DNA of 64,000 bases from Phaeosaccion multiseriatum (lineage: Eukaryota > Protista > Ochrophyta, other classes), in NCBI GenBank assembly GCA_965112735.1, contig OZ218952.1, positions 4,836,001 through 4,900,000 on the forward strand, in the 5' to 3' direction. Of this stretch, positions 47,584 to 62,803 are shown in pieces (the first letter of the stretch is position 1; every line of letters starts with the position of its first letter). A program made the translations under genes and the position numbers. Below the pieces are notes generated by a model. It had not been told where the DNA came from, ran no database searches, and was given only the letters and a program-made list of their open reading frames with translations.

Positions 47584-50524
47584 TTCTTTCTCTCTCTCTT
47601 CTCTCTCTCTCTCTTCTCTCTCTTCTCTCTCTCTCTCCTCTGTTTTTTCTCTCTCTCTGTCTGTCTCTCCCTGTCTCGCTACTCAGCCTGCTCACCCCTC
47701 TCTCTCTTCTCTTTCTCTCTCTCTTATCTCTCTATCACTTTTCCCTCTCTCTCTCTCTTCCCTTCTCTCCGTCGCTCACATCTTCCTGTAACCCCACTCC
47801 TTGCTCGCTCCTTCCTCCCTTGTCTCCCTCTCCTCCTCTCTCCTTCCTCTTCCACACCTCTGACTCCCCCCCCAAATAGGCCGGCGTACCGCTGCGTTCC
47901 GTGGTGACGGCAGTGAACAAGGTCGGGGTGCTGGGAAGTGGGTACGACTCCACTCTCAGCGCCATCAAGGCGGCAGGCAAACCCGTGAGTGATGGAGCGA
48001 GGCGACAGGCAGCAGTGCAGTTCTTGGATTGGACTTGGTCCGTTTGCAACCCCTGAATGGCAGTGCGGGTGCCGCTTTCAGGCCTCCCCTGGGACGCCCT
48101 TCCCTCTGCCCTTCCCTCCTCCCCTCACTGCGGCGTCTCCCCCGCCGATGGCCACCCACCCCACGCACCCACCCCCCCCTGTGCGCAGGTCAGCATCGGC
48201 TTCCGGCAGCTGCACGCCGTGTATGATGGAGGCCCCCTCGGTTCCACACGCTACTGGCAAGGCTACCTCAGGGGCAAGACACAACTCCTGCCCTCCCACA
48301 GCACTACACAGGGCAGGACCGAGGGCAAGGGCCTGGCACAGGGCAAGGGACAGGCAGAGGGGGGTGGCAAGGCAGTGGTGAGTCAGCAGTCTCAGCAGTC
48401 TCAGCAGTCTCTGGCGTGGACGGGACGCTTCTACGTGCTGCGGGCCGACGGATATCTCTACGCTTATGCGGGCAAGGAGCTGCGAGACCGGCCTGTCGAA
48501 GCCATCAGCGTGCAGGAGGCGACACTCGTGTATGGCCAGGGGCTGCTCAAGCAGTTTGCCTCGGCGCTGCTAGAGAAAGAGGCCGCCTCCTGCCCCGAGG
48601 TCTACAAGCACTCCTTCGCGCTGCTAAGGCCCGATGACGTCATTGTGCTCAGGGCCGACAGCGAGGCGCAAATGCTCGACTGGTGAGTCAGTGAGTCAGT
48701 GAGTCAGTGAGTCAGTGAGAGAGTGAGGGAGGGAGTGAATGAGTGGGGGGAGGTGAGTAAGGAAGTCAGTGAGTATTCAGTGGGTGAGTGAGTGAGTGAC
48801 TGACTGACTGACTGGCTGACTGGCTGAGCGAGTGAGTGAGAGAATCAGTGAGTGAGTGAGAGAGTGAGGGAGGGAGTGAATGAGTGGGGGGAGGTGAGTA
48901 AGGAAGTCAGTGAGTATTCAGTGGGTGAGTGAGTGAGTGACTGACTGACTGACTGGCTGACTGGCTGAGCGAGTGAGTGAGAGAATCAGTGAGTGAGTGA
49001 GTGAGTGAGTGAGTGAGTGAGTGAGTGAGTGAGTGAGTGAGTGAGTGAGTGAGTGAGTGAGTGAGTGAGTTGAGAGAGGAGGGAGGAGGCAGCACTTCGG
49101 TAGCTGAGGTGCATCCCTTGGATGGGGCTTTCTTTCCTATGACACGGCAGCGCAGCGCCCCTGCCCCTTTTGCTTGCATGACCTACTCTCCGAGGCTCTT
49201 TCTTACCCATGTGCCTCCATCCCGGGCCTGTTGGTGCTACAGGGTGTGTGCCATTACTGTGCTGGAGCTCGGACTACTTAGCGACAAGCAAGCGGCGGTA
49301 CTGCATGGGTCAAGGCCAGTGGGGGCAATGGCGGTGTCTCCGCCGCTGACCCCCTCGGGACAGGGAGGACGTCCGGCGACGGCGCCTTGGGCGGAAGGGG
49401 GGGGGATGGCAGTGGATGGGAAAGAGCTCAGCACGAGAACGCCGAGAGAGACCTCTTCCGGTTCATTGCTCGGGCCGTCAGGAAGAGGGGGACGAGGAGG
49501 AGGAGGAGGAGGAGGAGGAGGGGGGGGAGGAGGAGGGGGAGAAGGAGGAGACGAAGGAGGGGGGGGCGAGGGGGGGGACAAGCTCCGGAGAGACAGCTGG
49601 AACGGCGCTAGTGCTGCCCCTGTTGTAACCGGCTCGAGGAGGAGACTCGCGTCGGGTGGTGGTGGTGGTGGTGGTGGTGGAGGAGGAGGAGGAGGAGAGG
49701 TGGGGGGGGGAGGAGGCGAAGGAGGAGGAGCAATGAGAGAGAGGCGAGGCAGTGCCAGCGGTACCATTGCGGTGGGGTCGTCAAGGCGGCGGCAGCAGGC
49801 GGCGGTTTGTAAGCAAGGTTACTTGTCCATACGTAAGGGTGGTGGACTTGGAGGGGGGGGTGGGGCGCTCTCCCTCCCATCGGGCTATTGGAGCTGGAGC
49901 CAGCGGTGGGTCGTGCTTCTCGAGGACGGAAGGATGTTGTGGTTCCATCAGATTCCGCACGATGTTGCCGGGTGAGTGGATGGTGGAGGGAGAGAGTGAG
50001 AGGGAAGGAGGCAGGAGGCATATGGGGGGGGGAGGGAGAGGAGATGTTTCATCTTCGTCTGTGCACTTGTTCTTGTCCGCAAGCAGAGAGGTGCCCCTTG
50101 CTCACAAATGATGTACGTTCTGAACAGGGAGATGCCCAATGGCCAGCTCGAGGCGCGGGGCGCGCATGTTATGGTATCTGAAGAGGAGGTCAAGGAGAGA
50201 GGGGAGGAGGGAGGAGGAGCAGGAGGAGGAGGAGAAGGTGGAGGGGGAGGGGGAGGGGGAGCTACGCCTGACGAGCCTGCCCTCAGCAGCAGCAGCAGCA
50301 GTCATGTGGGTAGCAGTAAGAGTTTCGCTTTTGGGCTGAAGACTGCCTCCCGCACGCTCTTCCTACGCGCAAGCAGCCCGGAGGAGAGAGACGAGTGGGT
50401 GCATGTGCTCGGTGGGGTGTTAGGAGACGGAGGAGGAGCAGGAGCAGGAGCAGGAGGGGGAGGAGGAGCAGGAGGAGGAGGAGCAGGAGGAGGAACAGGA
50501 GGAGGAGGGGGAGGAGGAGGAGGA

Positions 50525-50560
<36 letters not shown>

Positions 50561-51757
50561 GCTGGAGCAGTGGCGGGAGGGGCAGCACCAGCACCAGAGG
50601 ACGGCCAAGCGACCAATCAGTCCTTTGTGGCGGCGACGGACACTGTGGCAGCCAGGAGGGCCGCGGATCTGCTTGCCATCAGCGACCATCCGCAGATGCT
50701 GTTCGACGACCCCGCGAGGGCCTACAGCCTCGTGATGGAGGCCTCCCGCGGCGGCGGAGGCATCAGGAAAGATGCCTTCCTGCGCGTAGCGGGGCAGAGC
50801 TTCCTCCCCCTGTGCGATGTATTCACTGCCGAGGCCGTGTTTGATGCGTTGCTGCGGAGGGAGGACGGAGCAGACAGACGTGAGTGCAGCTGGAGTCTTG
50901 CGCGAGGGTTGTTGAGTGAGTGGGTGGAGTGGGTGGGTAGGAAGGGACAGATGAAGGACCGAGGGATGCCTTCACCCCAGCCCCCCCCCACGCCATCCAC
51001 TGCCATCCCTTAAGCTCCCTCTCCATGAGCTCACCCCTTCACCCCTCCCTTCCTTCACACACAGGCGAGAGCAGTAGCAGCTACGGTGCCTCTTCCTCCT
51101 TGTCCTCCTCCCTCGGCAAGAAGGGTTCAGGAGCAGGCAGCGGCTCCTGGGGGGGGATGGCACTCAACGGACTGTGGGGCAGGGGGGGGGCGGCAGCGGC
51201 GTTGTTTGAAGACGTGTTGTCGCACATGTCGACGGTTTCGGGAGTGGACGGTGTCAGGACCCGCACAGTGACCGCAGAGCCGCTGGGAGGGGCCACCAAG
51301 ATGACCTTCGACCTCTTCAACGTAAGAGAGAGGGAGATGGCCTTTGCAGATGCCAGTGGATGGAGAGAGCCGCGAGGGACAATGTCGAGATGGCAGTGGA
51401 TGAGGAAAGACTGTCGAGATGGCAGTGGATGGAGAAGGCCAGGCAGTACGGCCTTGCTTAGGCATTGCCCTCCCCCTCGTGGGACATGAGAGGTCGTGAC
51501 GCGCTGCCCTCCCTCTCTCTGTTTCTGTCTCTTACCTCCTTCTCTCTGCCCATGTGCCTCTCTCTCTCTCGTCCCTCTCCCTCTGCCTCTCTGTGTACCT
51601 CTCTCTTTCTCTCCCTCCCTCTCTCCCTCCCTCCCTCCCTCCTTCTCTCTCTCTATTTCGGCCCATATGACTCTGCCGCAGCGCTATGTGGAGGCCGTGC
51701 AGAGCTGCGCGACGCATCCGCAGTCGTGGACAGACCTTCGCATCCGACTAGGTGGGG

Positions 51758-51807
<50 letters not shown>

Positions 51808-53697
51808 TTAGACATTGGCGTGGTGCACCCCCCCCTTACCCACCCCACCCTTGTATTTCACCCTCCCCTCCCCCCTCCCCCTCCCAAGGCCTGGACCCTC
51901 TGGAAACCCTCGTCATGAACCAAGAACACGTGAGCGAGAAGGCCCCTGCGCTGTTCGGTCTGTCTGACCAGGGCTCCCTGTACCTCACCGACAGGCACTT
52001 GTATCTGCACCTCCCGCTCAAGCAGCTGGTGCGCGTGGTGCCTCTTGCGACGGTGCGGACCGTCAAGGAGGTGTCAGGACAGGGGGGGGGTGTGGCGTCT
52101 TCGCTCACCGAGGCCTTCGAGTTGGGGGGGTGCGACGTGCACACGGTGTCACTGCAGCAGCAGTTGGTGGTACAGGCGGCGCAACAGGGGGACGACGCGG
52201 GGGGGGCAGCGGGGGCGGAGCAGCAGCACAGGGGCGCCACCAGCGCTGCCTCGTGTCAGGACTACAGATTGGGTACGTGTGGGTTACGTGTGGGTCACGT
52301 ATCGGTTACTCAGAGGCTATGTATCTATCATAGCCACCCATCCCGCCCCTCGGGTATCGCTTGCACCCCTCGGGTATCGCTTGCACCCCTCGGGTATCGC
52401 TTGCACCCCTCGGGTATATCTATATATTGCTTGGGGTCAGGGCGGTGCGTGCCCCGACTCTCTGCTGCACTACAAGAGCCAAAGCTGACGATCCATTTGT
52501 GAATGCATGCCCCTGTATGATGAACTGACGCAGTGCTCTCTAAGGTCAAGGGCATGCTCGGGCTGGACGATGCGCACAAGCACGGGGGCCGGAGAAGGGT
52601 GTGGGTGGACTTCCTGGTACGTCCACTTCACGTCACTTTTCTCCACTTCCTCGAGCCAAGTGCGAGGGAGGGAGGGGGGGAGGGAGGGAGGTGAATCGAT
52701 GGGTAGGACTGCACTAGAAGAGAAGTAGAGCTGCACGAGAAGAGAAGTAGAGCTGCACGAGAAGAGAAGTAGAGGGCGTGTCCCCCCCCCCCCAGCGCTT
52801 CCCCTGTCTCCTCTCTCTTGTGCAAAGCTCACGATTCCGACTCCTTTCCCACTCCCCCACGTCGCCCTGCCCATATGCCTGTCCTGCCTGCCTGCCCGCC
52901 TGCCCGCCCATACGCCTTCTCATCCGTCCAGAGGGAGCTCGTCGCGGCGCAGTCCATCACCAACTTGTCTCCCTCCTCCCCTCGGGCCCTCAGCGCCTTT
53001 CTGGCCTCCTTCGCCTCCTCGCCAGACTCGGTGGCTCCGGGGTCGAAACGCCCCTCACCCCACAAGGGCACAGCCCCCTCGGGGCGCTCAATGCCCTCCC
53101 CCGGGGTGCAGAGAGGTGCTTCCCCTTCCCCTGTGCATGGGGCCAATGGGGCCAGCAGGAGCAGGAGTGGCAGCAGCAATAGCAGCAGCAGCAGCAGTGG
53201 TGTTGGCGCAGAGGGTAGGGAGCACTCGTCCGCGACAGCACCAGCAGCATCAGCAGCACCAGCAGCACCAGTGGCACCAGCGGCGGCAACGTCTGGCTCG
53301 GCAGCATCAGGGCAGGGCCTGGGCAGTGCCACCCTAAGGAACTTCACCACCAAGCTCAAACTGCTCGTCAGGGAGGAGGAGCAGGGGCCGGAGGCCTACG
53401 AGGTGGGTGGGATGGCAGTGTATGGCAGTGCATGGCACTGGATGGCAGTGTAAGGCTCTGGATGGTAGTGTGTGGCAGTGTATGGCACTGGATGGCACTG
53501 GATAGCAGTAGAGGGGTGGGCGGGTGGGATGGCAGTGGAGGGGTGCGCAGGCTGGCCTGGCTTGAGTGGGGTGGAACGGAGGGCGCCATGGGCACTCACT
53601 CTATCGTAGCCCCTCTCTCTCTCTCTCGGCCCATAGGCCTCCCTTCTCTCTCTGTCCCAAACCTCTCTCCTTCTCTCGACCTGCCCATGCCCCCCCC

Positions 53698-53755
<58 letters not shown>

Positions 53756-54653
53756 ATGTGTGTGTCGACGGTCGCTGTTCCTGAGTTGAAGGCTGTGCCA
53801 GTGTGCCTCATCCATCCCAGTCACTTACTCTCATGCCCTCTTATCCCTCCATCCACTGCCATCCACTGCCATCCACTGCCATCTTCTGCCATCCCCCCAC
53901 AGGTGCAGCGGAACCGCGTGAGTCTGTGGGTGGCTGCCAACCTCATCCGCACCCGCGCCATCCTGCGGGCCTCCTCTTCCGCCTCCTCCTCCTCCTCCGC
54001 CTCTGCCTCGTCCTCCTCCTCCTCGTCCTCTTCCTCCTCCGCCACCCACACCGATGCTCTCCTGTTGTGCTCAAGGCTGCATCTGCCGCGCTGCAGAGAG
54101 CTGCTGAGGGCCTTCCTGCTCGGGGGGGAGGAGGGAGATGCAGGTGGGTGTGTATGTGTGTTTGGGGGGTGGGGGGGTGCCCAACCAGTGGGAATTTGGC
54201 GTTCGCAATCTTGTCGTAGTGTACAGTCGTCTGACTTGTTGTCTGCTTACCCGCTCTGGTCTTGTGTTCTCGCTGCAGTTTTTTGGGCTGATTGGTATAT
54301 ATCGCCATCCTCCTCACACACCCCCCATCCCTCCTATACCCCCTTGGTGTTGCTGCCGTACCTCCCCGCAGGGGCGGTGCCTCAGGCTTCATCCAGTGCC
54401 GATACAGACGTCAAGAGGGGCCAACAGCAGCTGCAGCAGTTGGTGATACAGCAGCAGGAGCACTTGGTGATACAGCAGCAGTCGTCAGCGAGAGGGGGCG
54501 GATCTGCCATGACTTCTCCCACGGGCTCTTCGTCTCCTCCACGGAGAGGCTCCGAGAGCGCGGGGTCAGCAGCAGCAGTTGGTGATACAGCAGCAGTAGT
54601 AGAGGAGGGGCCGGGAGGGGGAGGGGGAGGGGGAGGGGGCGCGAGAGACGGGC

Positions 54654-54721
<68 letters not shown>

Positions 54722-55221
54722 AAGCAGCAGCAGCAGCAGCAGCAGCAAGCACATGGGCAGCAGCAGGGGAGCTCTCCCTCCTCTGCCCTCCCCTCCCCCC
54801 CTCCCCCTCCCCCTCCCGGCCCCTCCCCCTACCGCATGCGATCCCGTCGCTGGCAGCTCGTGCTGGCCCAGTACATGGCAGGCACGTCTCACTTCAAGCA
54901 GCAGAGAGAGAGGAGCAACGGGCTCTTCACGCCGCACAAGCTCAGGAGCGAGTGGGCGCTGTTCTGGGGAGTGTTGGACCCCGTGCTGGAGGGGGTGGTG
55001 CAGGCGGCCGAGGGGCTGAGAAGGTGGCACAGCCCGCCTGCGAGCTTCGTCGTCATGTGGGGGCTGCTCTTCATCGCATGTACGTGTGGGGTGTACGTGG
55101 GTGTACGCCAGCCTGTGGGGGGTCTTTGGGGTGACTCTGTATGTGTCTCTGTGTTCTCTCTGTGTGTGCATGTCTCCGTGTCTTACTTGCCTGTCTGCGT
55201 GCCTGCTCGTATGCCCATGTG

Positions 55222-55269
<48 letters not shown>

Positions 55270-57087
55270 CCCATATGCCTGCGCTCAGGAGATGAGTATA
55301 TATATTGGAGTGCCTTTGAGTCTTCTCTCTTTTGTATCCTCCCGTCGCTCTGCTGCCGTATCACCAACTGGTGTGCCCCGTGTCCCTGCCGTATCACCAA
55401 CTGGTGTACCCTGTGTCCCATACCCCGCAGACCACGACCTGGTGGGCTACATCATCCCCTGCCTCGGCGCTGCCAACGCCGTGTTCGTCATTTGGCTCGG
55501 CCACAACGTGAACAAGCAGTTGGTGATACAGCAGCAGCAGCAACAACAGCAAGCACATGGCCAGGACCAGTCCCACCCCTCTGGAGCAGCGGAGGGGGGT
55601 GCCAGTGTCGGTGCCACTGCCGTCGGAGCAGCGCTGGACTCGGCTCAGCAGCCCTCCTCCTCCTCCTCCTCCTCCTCTTCCACAGCCGCCAGGCAGCACA
55701 GCCGCCATGCGATGATGTCTTTCTTACATGGCGATGGTGACGAAGGGGGGGGCGGGGGCGCGGCTTCGGTCACCAACACCATCACCAGCACCAGCCCAAC
55801 CCCAATGAGCATTAGTAGAGGTAGTAGCAGCAGCAGCAGCAAGCCTACGGGCACAGAAGGAGGCGCGGGTGGTGGTGGTGTTGGTGGTGGTGGTGGTGGT
55901 GGTGGTGGTGGTGGTGGAGGAGGAGGAGGAGTGAGCGATGCCGGTACCGCAGACGCTGGCACTACCGCTGGTGGCAATAGCGGGGGAGGAGGAGGGGGAG
56001 GAGGAGGGGGAGGGGGAGGCGGGCTCAGCATCTTCTCGCAGCTCAAGGGCATGCAAGCCAGCGCGGGGCGCATGCAGGCAAAGCTCCACGCCTACAACAC
56101 CTTCCTGCTCAAAGTGCACGCCCTGCATACATGGAGAGACCCCACGCGCACAAAGGTGGGAGAGGGAAGGAGGGAGGGAAGGGAGGGAAGGAGGGAAGGG
56201 AGGGAGGGAAGGGAGGGAGGGAAGGGTGGGAGGGAAGGGTGGGAGTGGGAGGGAGGTGGGCAAGCTTGGGTGTCGGTCAGGGCGGGGCAGGGACAGGGGC
56301 AGGAGCCGCGGGCATGGGCAGTCCACCTCCGCACTCCATTGATTGATTGATTGGTTGGTTGATTGATTGATTCCGCTCTGTCCACTTTGTACCGTTGCCC
56401 CCCCCCCCTCACTTCCTTACTGCCTCACTGCCTCACTGCCTCACTGCCTCACTTCCGTACCTACCCACGCCTTGAGTTGACATGTCCTCGTCGCTTGTCT
56501 TGTCCCATGTGTATATCCCTCACCCCTGTCCGCCCATCACCCATGCATCAATGCACCAATGCACCAATCCATCCGATGATCAGGTGTGGATCTTCCTCAT
56601 GCTCGTGCTGAGCGTCGTGCTTTCCACCGTGCCCTCGCGCTTCCTGTGGGCTGTGTTGGTGCTCTACTTCTTCTCTGGTGAGCATCTGTGATCCTCTGTG
56701 ATCCTCTGTGAGCGTGAGCCTCTGTGAGCGTGAGCCTCTGTGAGCCTCTGTGAGCCACTTCAGCAGGTGGTTACCTGTTTCGGGAATGTCCTGCTCCCTC
56801 TGACCCGATCCCTGCTCCCCACCCCTTATCCCCTCCCATCTGCTTGCCCATATGCCTGCCCATATGCCTGCCCATATGCCTGCCCATATGCCTGCCCATA
56901 TGCCTGCCCATATGCCTGCCCATATGCCTGCCCATATGCCTGCCCAGAGCCCCTGCGGCCTGTGGAGCCCACCCTGCCCGAGCTTCTGTGGTTGGACTTC
57001 TGGAGAGGCCTTCCCGTGGAGAGCAGCACACACACCAATTTACAAATGGCGGCAATATACAAAATGGAGCGGCAGAAGCACGAGTAG
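47182..57087 (+). CDS. Large multi-exon protein: two PH domains, a GRAM domain and an MCTP/GRAMD4-like C-terminal membrane region
   Basis: PH1 (WQGYL...[17 protein letters not shown]...[14 protein letters not shown], 48190-48682). PH2 (KQGYLSIR...[17 protein letters not shown]...[19 protein letters not shown]). GRAM ([12 protein letters not shown]...[10 protein letters not shown], about 51889-52272). C-terminus [33 protein letters not shown]...VPSRFL...FWRGLP. Internal exon boundaries are partly uncertain. Confidence 0.7.
48700..49070. repeat. About 140-bp tandem duplication plus (GAGT)n
   Basis: Two copies of gagagagtgagggagggagtgaatgagtgggggg...gagaatcagtgagt in an intron. Confidence 0.85.
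56845..56940. repeat. 12-bp tandem repeat x8 (TGCCCATATGCC) abutting a 3' splice site
   Basis: The array runs into tgcccag|AG at 56947. Confidence 0.92.
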
Positions 57088-57688
57088 AGACGGCGAGAGG
57101 CGCTGCTGTGGCGGGGGTTGACTGAGCGAATCGCCGTCTGTAGATAAAGATAGAAACGTGTAGATAACTCTTCTCTAATTTTAAGTTGATGACATTTTGA
57201 AAGGGAAAGAGGTGAAGAATGGAAGAAAGAATAGAAGACTCAGTAAGGCTGGAGGCAGCCATGAGCCATGTACGAGCAGGACGGGTACTTACTCTGACAC
57301 TCCTTACACTCTGAGCTTCCCTCACGGACTTACTATACTTGCTTGGAACAAAAGCTTTGCCATCGAGTGCCATCGAGTGCCATCGAGTGCAACCCTTGTC
57401 ATGAGAGCGAGTGACAGTGAGACGAGCGGAGACGTCCCCCCCTGGAGCTCTGGACACCCCTATACATGTACTTGCAAGTATTTGGACCGCTGTGACCCCT
57501 ATACATGTACTTGCAAGTATTTGGACCGCTGTGCCGCTCGCCTCTGGCCAGACTTGGCGCTGAGCGGCCTCCTTGCCTGCCTGCCTACCTGCTTACCTGC
57601 CTGCCTACCTGCTTACCTGCCTGCCTACCTGCCCACCTGTCTGCCTACCTGTCCACCTGCCTACCTGTCCACCTGCCTACCTGCCTAC

Positions 57689-60240
57689 CTACGGACTGCG
57701 GTCAGCCTGGTATAGCAGGTGGTAGCAGGCCAACGAGGAGGCGTAGGAGGCGGCGAAGGAGGGCGGGAACTTGAGCAGCATGGGCCACGCCCCTGCGTAG
57801 AGCCTTGTGTACCTTGTGTACAGCCCGAGCACGCCGTTGGCAGCCACCACGGCCCGGACACCTCGCCAAGTGCTGCGCAAGGAGGTGTCAGGACCTTTGC
57901 CCTTGGTGCTGCTGCTGCTGCCCATGTGACTGCCGCTGCCCCCTGCAGATGCAGGCGGTGCCCCTGTTGCTCTTCCCCCTGCTGCTGCTGCTGTCGCTGC
58001 TCCTCCCACTCCTCCTCCTGTTGGTGCTCCGGCTGCTACTGCTGCTGCTGCTCGCTCCCTCCCTCCCGTGGGTGTGTGGGCAAAGGCCTGCAGCTGAGCT
58101 CGCCTTCGAATGCCGTCAAAGGGAAACGCCACTAGTTGGGCCTGAGGGCAGAGGGCAGAGATGGCAGTGGATGGGGAAAGGGGAGAGGGGGGCAATCTTA
58201 CGTACTACTACGAAGTACGGAATAAAGCGAGTGGTCGGAAGGGAGGTGTGTGTAGAGACCAACAGCGCAGCATCGACCACTGCTCCCCCTCACTCACTCA
58301 CTCGCTCATTTACTCACTCATGCACTTACTCACTCACTCGCCTGCTTGCTCACTTACTCACTCACTCCCTCACAATCTCCCTCCGTCCCTCCCTCACTCA
58401 CTCACTCACTCACTCACTGACCCACTCCCTCCGTCCCTCACTCACTCACTCATTCACTTACTCACTCACTCACTGACTCACTGACTCACTGACTCACTGA
58501 CTCACTCACTGACTTACGCACTCTCACCCACTCACTCACTCACTCACTCACTCACTCACTCACTCACTCACTCACTCACTCCCTCACTCACTCACTCACT
58601 CACTCACTCACTCACTCGCTCACTCACTCGCTCACTCACTCACTCACTCACTCACACTCTCCCCCCCACTCATCCACCCACCCACCCACTCAACCCACCC
58701 CTTGACCCACTCACCAGCAGCCCCGCCGCGGCGCCCCCCAGCAGCATGGAGCGGTGGTGGTGCTTGTTGTCTGCGTGCAGATGCAGCAGGTCGCGGTGAT
58801 GGCCATGGTGCGAGTGGGGACGGAGGGCGGCGAGCAGGGATGTGTTGATACCCATGTAGAGAGAGGCCCAGCACACACTGGGGGCGGGCGCACAGAGGTA
58901 GGCGGACAAGGGCATGGGTTTAATTGGAGGTATATGGGTCAGGGCCAACACGAGGGGTAACAGGGCAAGCCCTTTGGCGGGAAAGAAGGCGGCGACATCG
59001 ACTTGGGCAGGGCTCGGGTTCGGTTTCTTCCCCTAGTAAGTCAATAAAAAATTGTGACAGACGGCACTCTCCAGTGTCACTCCTTGTCACTCCTTGTCAG
59101 TCACTCCTTGTCAGTCACTCCTTGTCACTCCTTGTCAGTCACTCCTTGTCACTCCTTGTCATTCTCTATCCTTGTCACTCCTTGTCACTCCTTGTCATTC
59201 TCTATCCTTGTCACTCCCTGTCACTCCTTGTCACTCCTTGTCACTCCTTGTCACTCCTTGTCATTCTCTATCCTTGTCACTCCTTGTCAGTCACTCTGTG
59301 TCAACGTCAACATGCGCTGTACACCCCCCCCCCCCACTCCGCCCCAGAGATTTGCCCTAATGTCGTGTGATGCCCCTCTCTTGTGGCCCCGCCTCTTCCT
59401 CCGCCCCACCCATTGACTTAGTCCCACCCCACCCATTGACTTAGTCCCCACCCCACCCATTGACTTAGTCCCCATTGACATAGTACCCACCTCGCTGGCA
59501 TGCCCCTACAAAGCACGCGCGGCCCCTCCCTCCGCACGAGGCCCCTGAGCTCCAAGAGGCTCTGCCGCACGGGGCCGACTGACCCGTTGGAGCTTCGATG
59601 CCCAGATGGCGACGCCTCCCCCCCCCCTGCACACACAGTCACACGGGAGCGCAGCATCTCCAGGGGGTTCGCCACAGCGTTGGCAGCGACGCCCGCAGCC
59701 GCACCTGCTAGCAGATGGCGAACCTCCAAAGGCAGAGCACCAACACCTCCACCACCGTCGCCATCATCATCACCTCCAGCACCAACATGTCCTCCGTCGC
59801 CTCGGCCGATGTCCCCCCCCCCGGCGGGGTCTCTGCCCAGCCTGGTGAGCAGCCAGCGATAGACCTGCATCTGCACGGCGAGCACAAGTCCGATGCGCAC
59901 GCAGTTGACGGAGTTGCCTCTGAACAGTCCTGACATGCCGTCTCTGCGGACCATGTCCCTCAGCCCAGACAGCACCCCCTTCTTGTTCTTGTTGTTGGTG
60001 TCAGGACCAGCGAGCCCATACGCCTCTAGATACCTGCCCCCCGCCTCGACCTGCCGCAGGATCTTGAGCCGCTCCAGGGGGGCCACGAGCGTCCTGCCCA
60101 CCATAGCGGCCAAAATGGCCACCCCTGTCCACGTATATCGGGACACTTCCCAGTCCGGCCCTTCTTCCACCCCGGGGCCGCTTGGAGCAGGAGGGAGAGA
60201 CGGGACGCTGAAGGCGCTGCTGTAGGATGCGGTTCTCTCC

Positions 60241-60282
<42 letters not shown>

Positions 60283-60414
60283 GCCGCCGCTGGTGTATCA
60301 CCAGCTGCTTTGCTGTCGCCGGGCTCTGGTGTACTCCCGCCGCTGACCCAGCTCCTTGCCGCCCGCCACCACATACCAACGCTACTACTACCACTACTAC
60401 TACTACTACTACTG

Positions 60415-60466
<52 letters not shown>

Positions 60467-62803
60467 CGCTGCTGCTGTTTCTACGACTACTACTAACACT
60501 GCTATTACTGCTGCTGCTGCTACTCATCTTTCTCTTGCGTCCGCTGCGACTCTCCATATCAACAGCCACCCCTCTCTCCACCTCTCTCTGTCTGTCTCTA
60601 TCTGCCTCTCTCTCTGTCTCCACCACCTCTCTCTGTCTGTCTCTATCTGCCTCTCTCTCTGTCTCCACCACCTCTCTCTGTCTGTCTCTATCTGCCTCTC
60701 TCTCTGTCTCCACCACCTCTCTCTGTCTGTCTCTATCTGCCTCTCTCTCTGTCTCCACCACCTCTCTCTGTCTGTCTCTATCTGCCTCCCTCTCTGTCTC
60801 CACCACCTCTCTCTGTCTGTCTCTATCTGCCTCCCTCTCTGTCTCCGCCACCCCGTTGCTGGCTTGTCCGCCCCCCTCCACGCGACTTGGGGGCACTTCC
60901 CGCTGCAGGACGAGGGCACCTCCTTGCCTGATATACACCTCAGATGGCAGCAAACACGCCCCCCCCAAGAGGCGGAGTCGATCGCGAGCGACAGACGACT
61001 GCACAGCAAAGTCCACGGGGAGGTACTCATTCTTCGGTGGGAAGTGCTCGTGCAGCAGGCCGAGGCGCTGGTAAAGGCCCGCCGCCAGCTCACTGCAAAA
61101 CAGGCCTTCTGCGTCTCGCTGCTGCTGTATCACCAACTGATCTAGCTGCCCATCATCCCCAGGCGGGGCGTTCTCGAAGAGGCTCCTCTCTGTGGCCGCC
61201 AATCGCCTCCTGAGCCTGGACAAGCGCTCCGCTCGCTCAGCAGACTGCTCAGCAGACTGCCCAGAAGACTGCCCATATGACTGGTCACATGACTGGTCAC
61301 ATGACTGTCCGTGTGACTGTCCGTGTGACTGTCCGTGTGACTGTCCGTGTGCCTGCCCGGCGTCCTGCAGCTCTACCGGCGGGTGGTAAGAGGAGGAGGA
61401 GGAGGAGGAGAAGAAGGGGTGGGGGAGGAGGAGGAGGAGGAGGAGGAGGAGAAGAAGGGGTGGGGAAGGAGAAGAAGGGGTGGGGGAGGAGGAGGAGGAG
61501 GAGGAGAAGAAGGGGTGGGGAAGGAGAAGAAGGGGGGGGGGAGGAGGAGGAGGAGGAGGAGAAGAAGGGGGTGGGGGAGGAGGAGGAGGGGGGAGGAGGG
61601 GTGGGGGAGGAGGAGGAGGAGGAGGAGAAGGGGTGGGGAAGGGGTGGGGGTGGGGATGGTGTAGAAGGAGAAGAAGGGGTGGGGGAGGAGGAGGAGGAGG
61701 AGGAGAAGAAGGGGTGGGGAAGGAGAAGAAGGGGTGGGGGAGGAGGAGGAGGAGGAGGAGAAGAAGGGGTGGGGGAGGAGGAGGAGGAGGAGGAGAAGAA
61801 GAAGGGGTGGGGGAGGGGATGGTGTAGAAGGAGAAGAAGGGGTGGGGGAGGAGGAGGAGGAGGAGGAGAAGAAGGGGTGGGGAAGGAGAAGAAGGGGTGG
61901 GGGAGGAGGAGGAGGAGGAGGAGAAGAAGGGGTGGGGGAGGAGGAGGAGGAGGAGGAGGAGGAGAAGAAGGGGTGGGGGAGGGGATGGTGTAGAAGGAGA
62001 AGAAGGGGTGGGGGAGGGGATGGTGTAGAAGAGAGACACCCAATCAATCGCCGACAAGCGCTGCACAAGCGCTGCACCAGCCACTCACTCGCGCAGCCAA
62101 GTCCGGTAGCCCGCCTCCCTCCCTCCGCCCGCAGGACCCCCGCTGACGCCCTCTCCGTGCCTCTCCTCCTTCCTTCCTCAAGTCACTCACTCACTCACCT
62201 GCGTGGAGCTTTCTGCGGTGCACCTTGGAAGGCAGCCCATCCGCGGCGGCGTTGAAGAGCTGCCCGAAGGACCCCTTGTAGGGCAAGTGCGACACACTTG
62301 CCACGTACTCTCGAGCTGCGGCGTCATGCTCCCGCCTAAGGGAGGGTGATAAAAGAGCCGCAAAGCGAGGTTAGAGTGCAGAAGAGCGGCAATGAGAGCC
62401 CAACCGTGGCCGCACCTCCACTCGTCGCAGACCGACAGCCTTCGCACGGCGATCTTGTGCGCCTTGCTCCGGAGCAGCCGCTGCCCAAGCTCATAGCACG
62501 TGACTCCTGAGAAGGCCGCCTCTACAAGCCGCTTGGTTCCCGTATCGTCGATGTACACCACGCCTGAGAGGAGGCGACGATTTCAGCTAGGGCCAAACAA
62601 ATCTCTCGCGAGTCGGGCCAAAGTCCCCATATCTTACCGAGATGATCCCACTCTGTGCTGTGCAGGAACTTGGTCGCGAGGCAGATCGCTCCACCCACGG
62701 CACCCATTGAGCCGCACGGCCGACTGAAGAGCACAATGTCTCCAGTGTCCAGTCCGGCGACCACATTCTCCACAATCAACGTCTCACTTCTGCTCCTCTT
62801 CAT
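57689..62803 (-). CDS. Fusion protein: permuted papain-like (YiiX/YaeF, C92-like NlpC/P60) amidase domain plus SLC25 mitochondrial carrier; the 5' end may extend to about 63304
   Basis: Exons about 62803-62638, 62563-62416, 62335-62199, 61372-59491, 58877-58715, 58141-57689. N-terminal LDTGDIVLF...WDHLGVV...IAVRRL...PY...LFCSELAAGLYQRLG...YLPVDF. C-terminal three carrier repeats: APLERLKILRQ / GLFRGNSVNCVRI, NPLEMLRSR, FPFDGIRRRAQ / GVLGLY. Confidence 0.8.
59074..59296. repeat. 10-bp unit minisatellite (GTCACTCCTT)n
   Basis: Many copies in a carrier-gene intron. Confidence 0.9.
60577..60850 (-). repeat. Coding 45-bp tandem repeat x6 (VETEREADRDRQREV)
   Basis: In-frame repeat in the linker between the amidase and carrier domains. 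Confidence 0.92.
61390..62035. repeat. Compound GA-rich minisatellite (GGAGAAGAAGGGGTGGGG / GAG runs)
   Basis: Fills intron 62198-61373 of the carrier fusion gene and generates spurious poly-P/L/S ORFs. Confidence 0.9.

Follow-up and report, generated by a model that had tools for sequence, protein, structure and literature searches.

Does the locus at positions 57689-62803, on the minus strand of a 64,000-nucleotide stretch of the Phaeosaccion multiseriatum genome (contig OZ218952.1, positions 4,836,001 to 4,900,000; the whole stretch is called the window below), encode one protein that joins a papain-like cysteine enzyme to a mitochondrial carrier, or is the union an artefact of the gene model? 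Sequence comparison confirms that the fusion of a Peptidase_C92 (C92) domain with an SLC25 carrier is real. We read the locus as a single six-exon gene and as a member of a eukaryotic family that joins a C92 enzyme with a carrier like APC/SCaMC (the ATP-Mg/Pi carriers), and we give this reading a probability of about 0.78.

The sequence-only reading of the window had proposed a single fused gene, arguing that the catalytic Cys motif LFCSEL and the first two carrier repeats share one uninterrupted exon. Both statements hold. The Cys codon (61097-61095) lies in the same exon as two stretches that match the Pfam family Mito_carr (63.6 bits, E 1.4e-17, cut-off 22.3), and the fusion recurs in at least 14 proteins of distant eukaryotes. 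An exhaustive search with the coding part of this exon leads to a set of long eukaryotic proteins, and 14 other database proteins carry an N-terminal Peptidase_C92 domain and three C-terminal Mito_carr repeats. They come from Chrysoparadoxa (P0004), metagenomes (P0138, P0148), Galdieria (P0016, P0156), Cyanidium (P0003, P0176), Phytophthora (P0027, P0171), Lagenidium (P0028), Achlya (P0089) and Mesostigma (P0067), and also include P0010 and P0119. P0138 and P0148 are single uninterrupted open reading frames (ORFs) on their contigs (2619 and 1779 bases), so that the fusion requires no splicing model there. Furthermore, Peptidase_C92, Mito_carr and cNMP_binding occur together in an ESM Atlas cluster of 66 proteins, mostly from oomycetes.

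The best matches of the window gene are ochrophytes, and P0004 is the closest relative of both of its halves. In most family members, two to three cyclic-nucleotide-binding domains, often together with an EF-hand, separate the enzyme from the carrier; the window gene, P0004, P0138 and P0148 have none of these. Judged from its sequence, the window gene is a short form, nearest to the short form of Chrysoparadoxa, in which low-complexity repeats replace the cyclic-nucleotide-binding and EF-hand stretch. Carriers with cyclic-nucleotide-binding and EF-hand domains, but without C92, also occur (P0007, P0054, P0045 and, in the ichthyosporean Chromosphaera perkinsii, P0059). SLC25 carriers with cyclic-nucleotide sensors may thus be more widespread than the C92 fusion.

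Gene model

The host nuclear genome comprises 67 Mb in 22 contigs, is repeat-rich and has a GC content of about 60%. The gene runs from 62803 to 57692 on the minus strand, and its six exons hold 2946 coding bases (982 codons), followed by a stop codon at 57691-57689. All five introns are bounded by GT and AG, and the exon phases sum to the 2946 bases. The sequence-only reading placed the gene limits correctly at 57689-62803 and did not explicitly mention exon 3 (62335-62199, with the Tyr motif). The large exon that it delimited at 61372-59491 has a canonical acceptor and donor and the right phase. The elements of the gene are as follows, with E-values from BLASTP.

62638-62803, minus strand: exon 1, with the ATG, the GD-IVLF strand, the conserved C-x10-C pair and, in WDHLG, the catalytic His (codon 62644-62642); donor GTAAGA, E 5e-17 to P0138 and 2e-15 to P0027, family alignment.
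62416-62563, minus strand: exon 2, beta strands that include IAVRRL and bear Glu, the third residue of the triad (LVEAA, codon 62522-62520); acceptor TCTCAG, donor GTGCGG, E 9e-11 to P0004, family alignment, role of Glu after PMC3142127.
62199-62335, minus strand: exon 3, the conserved-Tyr helix (LPYK, codon 62280-62278) and RRKLHA, the start of a helical insert; acceptor CCTTAG, donor GTGAGT, E 5e-8 to P0004, family alignment.
61373-62198, minus strand: intron 3, 826 bases, a purine/pyrimidine-rich array of 55-base and 3-base repeats (tandem repeats 61390-62036).
61372-59491, minus strand: exon 4 as a whole; acceptor CGGTAG, donor GTGGGT, phase correct.
60885-61372, minus strand: exon 4, first part, with an HGQS-type repeat, SLFEN, the catalytic Cys helix LFCSEL (Cys codon 61097-61095) and the end of C92; E 2e-14 to P0138 and 2e-13 to P0001, 12-base repeats at 61235-61359.
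60168-60884, minus strand: exon 4, linker, in which a 45-base repeat (encoding a 15-residue ETEREADRDRQREVV unit) occurs six times, along with runs of poly-Ser and poly-Ala.
59491-60167, minus strand: exon 4, last part, SLC25 repeats 1 and 2 with PLERLK (60080-60063), PLEMLR (59666-59649) and Gly/Asp-rich loop inserts; Mito_carr 63.6 bits, E 5e-17 to P0004, PDB matches to the ADP/ATP carrier (AAC) at E 1e-5.
58715-58877, minus strand: exon 5, with carrier helix 4, whose YMGIN contains the G-I contact point, then a His-rich loop and the beginning of helix 5; acceptor CCCCAG and donor GTGAGT in fitting phase, alignment to helix 4 of P0004.
57692-58141, minus strand: exon 6, SLC25 repeat 3 (PFDGIR, 58123-58106), a loop rich in Ala and Gly, and helix 6, which bears the conserved Lys, followed by the stop codon TAG (57691-57689); Mito_carr 18.3 bits, below the cut-off, tblastn matches of P0004, P0027 and P0010 at 58141-58064.

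Relatives match exons 1, 2, 3, 4 and 6 in collinear order in tblastn searches. The BLASTP matches of exons 1 to 4 to fused relatives follow the same order, and the similarity lies far above what chance would give. Exon 5 has no significant BLAST match of its own and is the weakest exon of the model. No relative matches intron 3 by tblastn. An uninterrupted minus-strand ORF (62084-59418, 888 residues) contains both LFCSEL and the two Mito_carr repeats; it reaches upstream of exon 4 because the repeat in intron 3 has no stop codons. A pseudogene was set aside, since reading frame, splice sites and catalytic residues are undamaged. We also rejected, as splice evidence, the apparent joints in four contig sets that contain the locus, which are artefacts of CTG/CAG repeats.

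Introns 3, 4 and 5 and the 3' flank consist mostly of micro- and minisatellites (58289-58655, 59075-59289, 61390-62036 and 57574-57692). The repeated units include CTCA (in about 92 copies), units of 10 and 36 bases, a purine-rich one of 55 bases and TGCCTACC. The convergent neighbour on the plus strand (50108-56350) is a large gene rich in low complexity, in which poly-Q, poly-G and poly-S form very long tracts. A stretch resembling a PH domain lies in its first ORF, and about 1.3 kb separates the end of this neighbour from the 3' end of the carrier gene.

The Peptidase_C92 domain

The YaeF/YiiX-like permuted NlpC/P60 enzymes are defined by four residues, namely a Cys/His dyad, a Tyr and a Glu that orients the His (Xu et al. 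2011, PMC3142127). The window protein was compared with this family exon by exon. Exons 1 to 4 align collinearly and residue by residue with a eukaryotic subfamily of these enzymes, and the catalytic set is complete, with one member per exon: His in exon 1, Glu in exon 2, Tyr in exon 3 and Cys in exon 4. WDH, LVEA, LPY and FCSEL of the window protein fall on invariant columns of the alignment of 17 relatives, and WDH, LEA, PY and FCS(E/Q)L are conserved across the family. Along the minus strand, the permuted order is His (62644-62642), Glu (62522-62520), then Cys (61097-61095). This bears out the order that the sequence-only reading had recognized, with the His of WDHLG upstream of the Cys, and its assignment to the permuted NlpC/P60 family is likewise supported by the retained His, Glu, Tyr and Cys, by relatives that align end to end and pass the Pfam cut-off, and by the fold predicted for the closest relative.

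The link to the Pfam family PF05708 (Peptidase_C92) runs through these relatives. The N-terminal part of exon 4 matches P0001 with E 8.6e-4 in a search of 5.8 billion sequences and with E 2e-13 in pairwise BLASTP. P0001 is a marine metagenome protein of 201 residues and a standalone member of PF05708 (37.7 bits). Ten fused relatives (P0003, P0004, P0010, P0016, P0027, P0028, P0067, P0119, P0138 and P0148) pass the PF05708 cut-off. Other searches were less productive. A PDB sequence search with the N-terminal part of exon 4 gave no match, an ESM Atlas feature search gave merely weak leads to PF05708 (scores 0.80-0.82), and a word-index protein search with the C92 or the carrier part of the 888-residue ORF returned nothing, probably owing to its length window and to low-complexity words. 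The C92 domain is single-copy in the alga's own genome, which has no long-form paralogue; a six-frame scan of this genome with PF05708 gave no match.

Residues 1-285 of P0004, folded with the family alignment, give a model with a mean predicted local distance difference test score (pLDDT) of 86.7 and a predicted template modelling score (pTM) of 0.79. Its six best PDB matches in Foldseek are all chains of YiiX (2if6) and of Bacillus cereus PPNE (3kw0), with a probability of 1.00. VIA-align superposes 152-163 residues, across model residues 7-272, with Z scores of 14.8 and 14.5, respectively. Residues 127-204 of the model are inserted between the helices that carry the Tyr and the Cys; they fold into an antiparallel helical hairpin, a feature specific to the eukaryotic subfamily. 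This insert of about 75 residues is present in the C92 domain of all fused relatives. It is an antiparallel coiled coil resembling the arm of seryl-tRNA synthetase or the tower of LSD1. The window insert (about 62215-61190) has about 62 residues, counted as the same total length as in the relatives; its first half is an HGQS tract, encoded by the 12-base repeats, that replaces half of the hairpin.

Just upstream of the catalytic His, the window protein (62710-62750) and its relatives share a conserved C-x10-C pair (R-P-C ... I-C), which P0001 lacks. The pair could form a disulfide or a metal site if the domain lies in the oxidising intermembrane space.

The position of the domain also suggests another role, that of a non-enzymatic lid on the carrier that senses lipid or acyl-coenzyme A (acyl-CoA), much as the EF-hand domain does in APC/SCaMC. 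C92 occupies the same N-terminal place as the regulatory domains of APC and of the aspartate/glutamate carriers, and in the long forms it stands in series with cyclic-nucleotide and EF-hand sensors. The cytoplasmic-gate motif of helix 2 is mostly lost in C92-fused carriers and retained in plain relatives, and YiiX was crystallised with a bound fatty acid (PMC3142127). However, the His, Glu/Asp, Tyr and Cys are invariant from red algae, a green alga, oomycetes and ochrophytes to the window protein, a pattern that selection on catalysis predicts. We regard a non-enzymatic lid as quite improbable and favour an enzyme domain.

The carrier half, the linker and their alternatives

The matrix-gate motif PX[DE]XX[KR] is intact in all three carrier repeats (PLERLK, PLEMLR and PFDGIR). 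The alignment also shows an Arg on helix 2, a G-I pair on helix 4 and a Lys on helix 6, at positions that we take to be substrate contacts from what is known of the ADP/ATP carrier. The nearest unfused carriers bear the source names SLC25A23/24/25/41, and the carrier half of P0004 is structurally closest to the SCaMC, APC and ADNT1 clusters of the ESM Atlas. The carrier half thus probably fits the ATP-Mg/Pi (APC/SCaMC)-like group, which agrees with an earlier guess, made from the letters, of an adenine-nucleotide type. A quick maximum-likelihood tree of the carrier halves sets the window protein, P0004 and P0138 apart from all others, with a Shimodaira-Hasegawa-like approximate likelihood ratio test (SH-aLRT) value of 93; these three have long branches, and the deeper order of the tree is without resolution.

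Several observations weigh against a single gene for an enzyme and a working carrier. The four runs that contain the locus are DNA contig sets from one sample, introns included. Pfam searches with single exons of the window gene, at E-values up to 10, gave no N-terminal match; the domain is split over four exons, whose pieces stay below significance because they are too short for the profile. The 45-base repeat of the linker is open in two of its three frames. The carrier is degenerate, with 63.6 plus 18 bits as compared with 150-190 in the long forms, and none of the three even helices has the cytoplasmic-gate motif [FY][DE]XX[KR]; the aligned residues are YRWLL, LAALR and YHLLY, lacking an acidic or basic pair. 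Within the matrix-helix motif [DE]G-x4-[YWF][KR]G of repeat 3, a 9-base in-frame tandem duplication (57803-57820, TACACAAGG twice) yields YTR-YTR. The low scores, the lost cytoplasmic motifs and the duplication make transport activity uncertain. Finally, the brown-alga models P0084 and P0118 comprise the C92 part only, and no carrier exon was found in the remaining 2-3.5 kb before their contigs end.

The cytoplasmic-gate motif is typical of SLC25 carriers and not a strict rule of membership; it is also lost in P0004, whereas plain relatives and some long forms retain Y[DE]xx[KR]. The brown-alga C92 loci (L010 10268-12582 in Discosporangium and L009 3271-5761 in Choristocarpus) have last exons that run into long low-complexity tails. 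Either the fusion was lost in these algae or their models are truncated.

The same degeneration could mean that the carrier half is a decayed six-helix anchor that no longer transports and simply fixes the C92 enzyme to an organelle membrane. Helix 2 has lost the Pro of its RI-x-P motif, the cytoplasmic salt-bridge motifs are gone from all three repeats, and large Gly/Asp-, His- and Ala/Gly-rich inserts interrupt the loops. The duplication, the low Pfam scores and the long branches of the window protein, P0004 and P0138 agree with an anchor, as would brown-alga homologues that may have no carrier at all. We nevertheless consider it unlikely. All three PX[DE]XX[KR] motifs and the Arg, G-I and Lys contact positions are retained, which a mere anchor would not need, and the 982-codon frame is intact with canonical splice sites.

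The linker between enzyme and carrier spans 231 residues of pure low complexity, encoded in part by tandem repeats at 60578-60852, 60382-60524 and 60242-60292. It has no Pfam match and no similarity to relatives in BLASTP. Pfam found neither a cyclic-nucleotide-binding domain (PF00027) nor an EF-hand in the 888-residue ORF, and no EF-hand in any exon. There is no in-frame stop between the C92 and carrier parts. With two of three frames open across the repeat, this open frame argues only moderately to weakly for one chain when taken alone. Accordingly, the linker could also be an accidental open frame through repeats that separate two neighbouring genes or transcripts, one for a C92 protein and one for a carrier, and Met codons do precede the carrier (MESRSG and MWWRAA). 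What makes this highly improbable is that the same domain order recurs in at least 14 distant proteins, single ORFs among them, and that the closest relative of each half is the same fused protein, P0004. A minority contig in two of the four DNA contig sets (X2 and X4) lacks one base at 60739, in the 45-base coding minisatellite. If real, this gap would put the enzyme and the carrier in different frames; a misassembly of the repeat is more likely.

Proposed function and comparison with known systems

Characterised permuted NlpC/P60 enzymes act on fatty-acyl linkages through an acyl-Cys intermediate; examples are LRAT and PLAAT, LnsA, which takes part in lipoprotein N-acylation, and the phospholipases Tox-Act1 and TseH (PMC3142127, PMC7387801, PMC12994826). 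YiiX was crystallised with its fatty acid in a hydrophobic S1 pocket (PMC3142127). By analogy with YiiX, LRAT/PLAAT, LnsA and Tox-Act1, the N-terminal domain would be catalytically active, with a Cys-His-Glu triad and an acyl-thioester intermediate formed from a fatty-acyl substrate. Candidate substrates are a phospholipid, acyl-CoA or an acylated protein. We infer that the domain is probably an acyl hydrolase or transferase set beside an APC-like carrier. A self-processing protease was considered and set aside, since the S1 pocket of the family is narrow and hydrophobic and suits acyl chains over peptides (PMC3142127).

The enzyme may be tethered by the flexible low-complexity linker and adjoin a carrier for an adenine-nucleotide-like solute. 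SLC25 carriers have both termini on the side of the intermembrane space or the cytosol, so the enzyme would act at that face of the membrane. It could gate the carrier, condition its lipid or acyl-CoA surroundings, or simply be anchored by it. The ancestral long form may have placed the enzyme-carrier pair under cyclic-nucleotide and Ca2+ control, and the window gene would have lost these sensors. We put forward, tentatively and as a possibility with the odds against it, that C92-SLC25 proteins form a new class of regulated organelle transporter, in which acylation or catalysis gates or feeds an adenine-nucleotide/CoA-type carrier under ancestral cyclic-nucleotide and Ca2+ control. If so, they would be the first enzyme-coupled and the first cyclic-nucleotide-regulated members of SLC25, and the short form of this alga would be a natural 'sensor-less' version.

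The sequence-only reading had suggested a search for the architecture across eukaryotes. The search succeeded in red algae, oomycetes and other algae, and part of the novelty was lost with it, as the proteins are already in public protein sets. They are named 'Cyclic nucleotide-binding domain-containing protein', 'Mitochondrial Carrier (MC) Family' or 'hypothetical protein', and the architecture is in this sense catalogued. We found no publication that describes a fusion of C92/NlpC with a mitochondrial carrier, within incomplete coverage of the literature, and publications that pair mitochondrial carriers with cyclic-nucleotide binding contain no description of the fusion as far as they were checked. 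To our knowledge, Ca2+-binding EF-hand domains are the only accessory modules described for SLC25 carriers. The family is an undescribed variant of the accessory-domain SLC25 carriers; the window gene adds a new and rather degenerate short form to it.

The family places a cysteine enzyme domain of lipid type, predicted to be catalytically intact, and a nucleotide-type carrier on one chain, mostly together with cyclic-nucleotide sensors. Conservation of this arrangement extends from red algae to oomycetes, among them the plant pathogens of the genus Phytophthora. If enzyme and carrier are coupled, lipid or acyl-CoA status and second messengers would be linked directly to organelle nucleotide transport, and the poorly understood YiiX family would gain its first eukaryotic functional context. 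For the locus itself, the practical result is a correct gene model and a place in an existing, unstudied family.

Among known systems, LRAT/PLAAT (H-Rev107), Staphylococcus aureus LnsA and Salmonella Tox-Act1 share the permuted Cys/His core and serve as the model for the putative acyl-thioester chemistry. They fall in other clades of this superfamily and have no fused transporter, and we do not claim the window protein as a member. Escherichia coli YiiX (2if6) and B. cereus PPNE (3kw0) have the same fold as the model of the closest relative, the same His...Glu...Tyr...Cys order and the same Pfam family as the fused relatives. These bacterial proteins are standalone enzymes of about 200 residues, whereas the eukaryotic subfamily has the hairpin of about 75 residues, the C-x10-C pair and a fused membrane transporter.

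The ATP-Mg/Pi carriers (SLC25A23/24/25/41) resemble the window protein in their N-terminal accessory domain, their three-repeat carrier, the G-I pair of helix 4 and the basic residues that helices 2 and 6 each bear. Their accessory domain consists of four EF-hands, whereas the window protein has a papain-like enzyme domain and no cytoplasmic network. As it has no EF-hands, the gene is not filed as an APC; the carrier half alone is APC-like.

The nearest systems are the other fused proteins. The short forms (Chrysoparadoxa australica CAM9545302.1, which is P0004 with 589 residues, P0138 and P0148) have the same domain order and no cyclic-nucleotide-binding or EF-hand domains, and they share with the window protein the C92 helical insert and the loss of the cytoplasmic-gate motifs. 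P0004 is up to 57% identical to the window protein in exon 1 and 42% identical over 151 carrier columns. The window protein differs in its length of 982 residues, owing to repeat-encoded linkers and loop inserts, in its lower carrier Pfam score and in the HGQS-type repeat that makes up half of its hairpin insert. The long forms (in oomycetes such as Achlya OQR92581.1 and Phytophthora KAE8999091.1, in the Cyanidiophyceae Galdieria KAK4524147.1 and Cyanidium KAK4534799.1, and in Mesostigma) have a homologous C92 domain and carrier in the same order, an identical catalytic set and the common insert. Between the two halves they carry two to three cyclic-nucleotide-binding domains and often an EF-hand, where the window protein has only its repeats.

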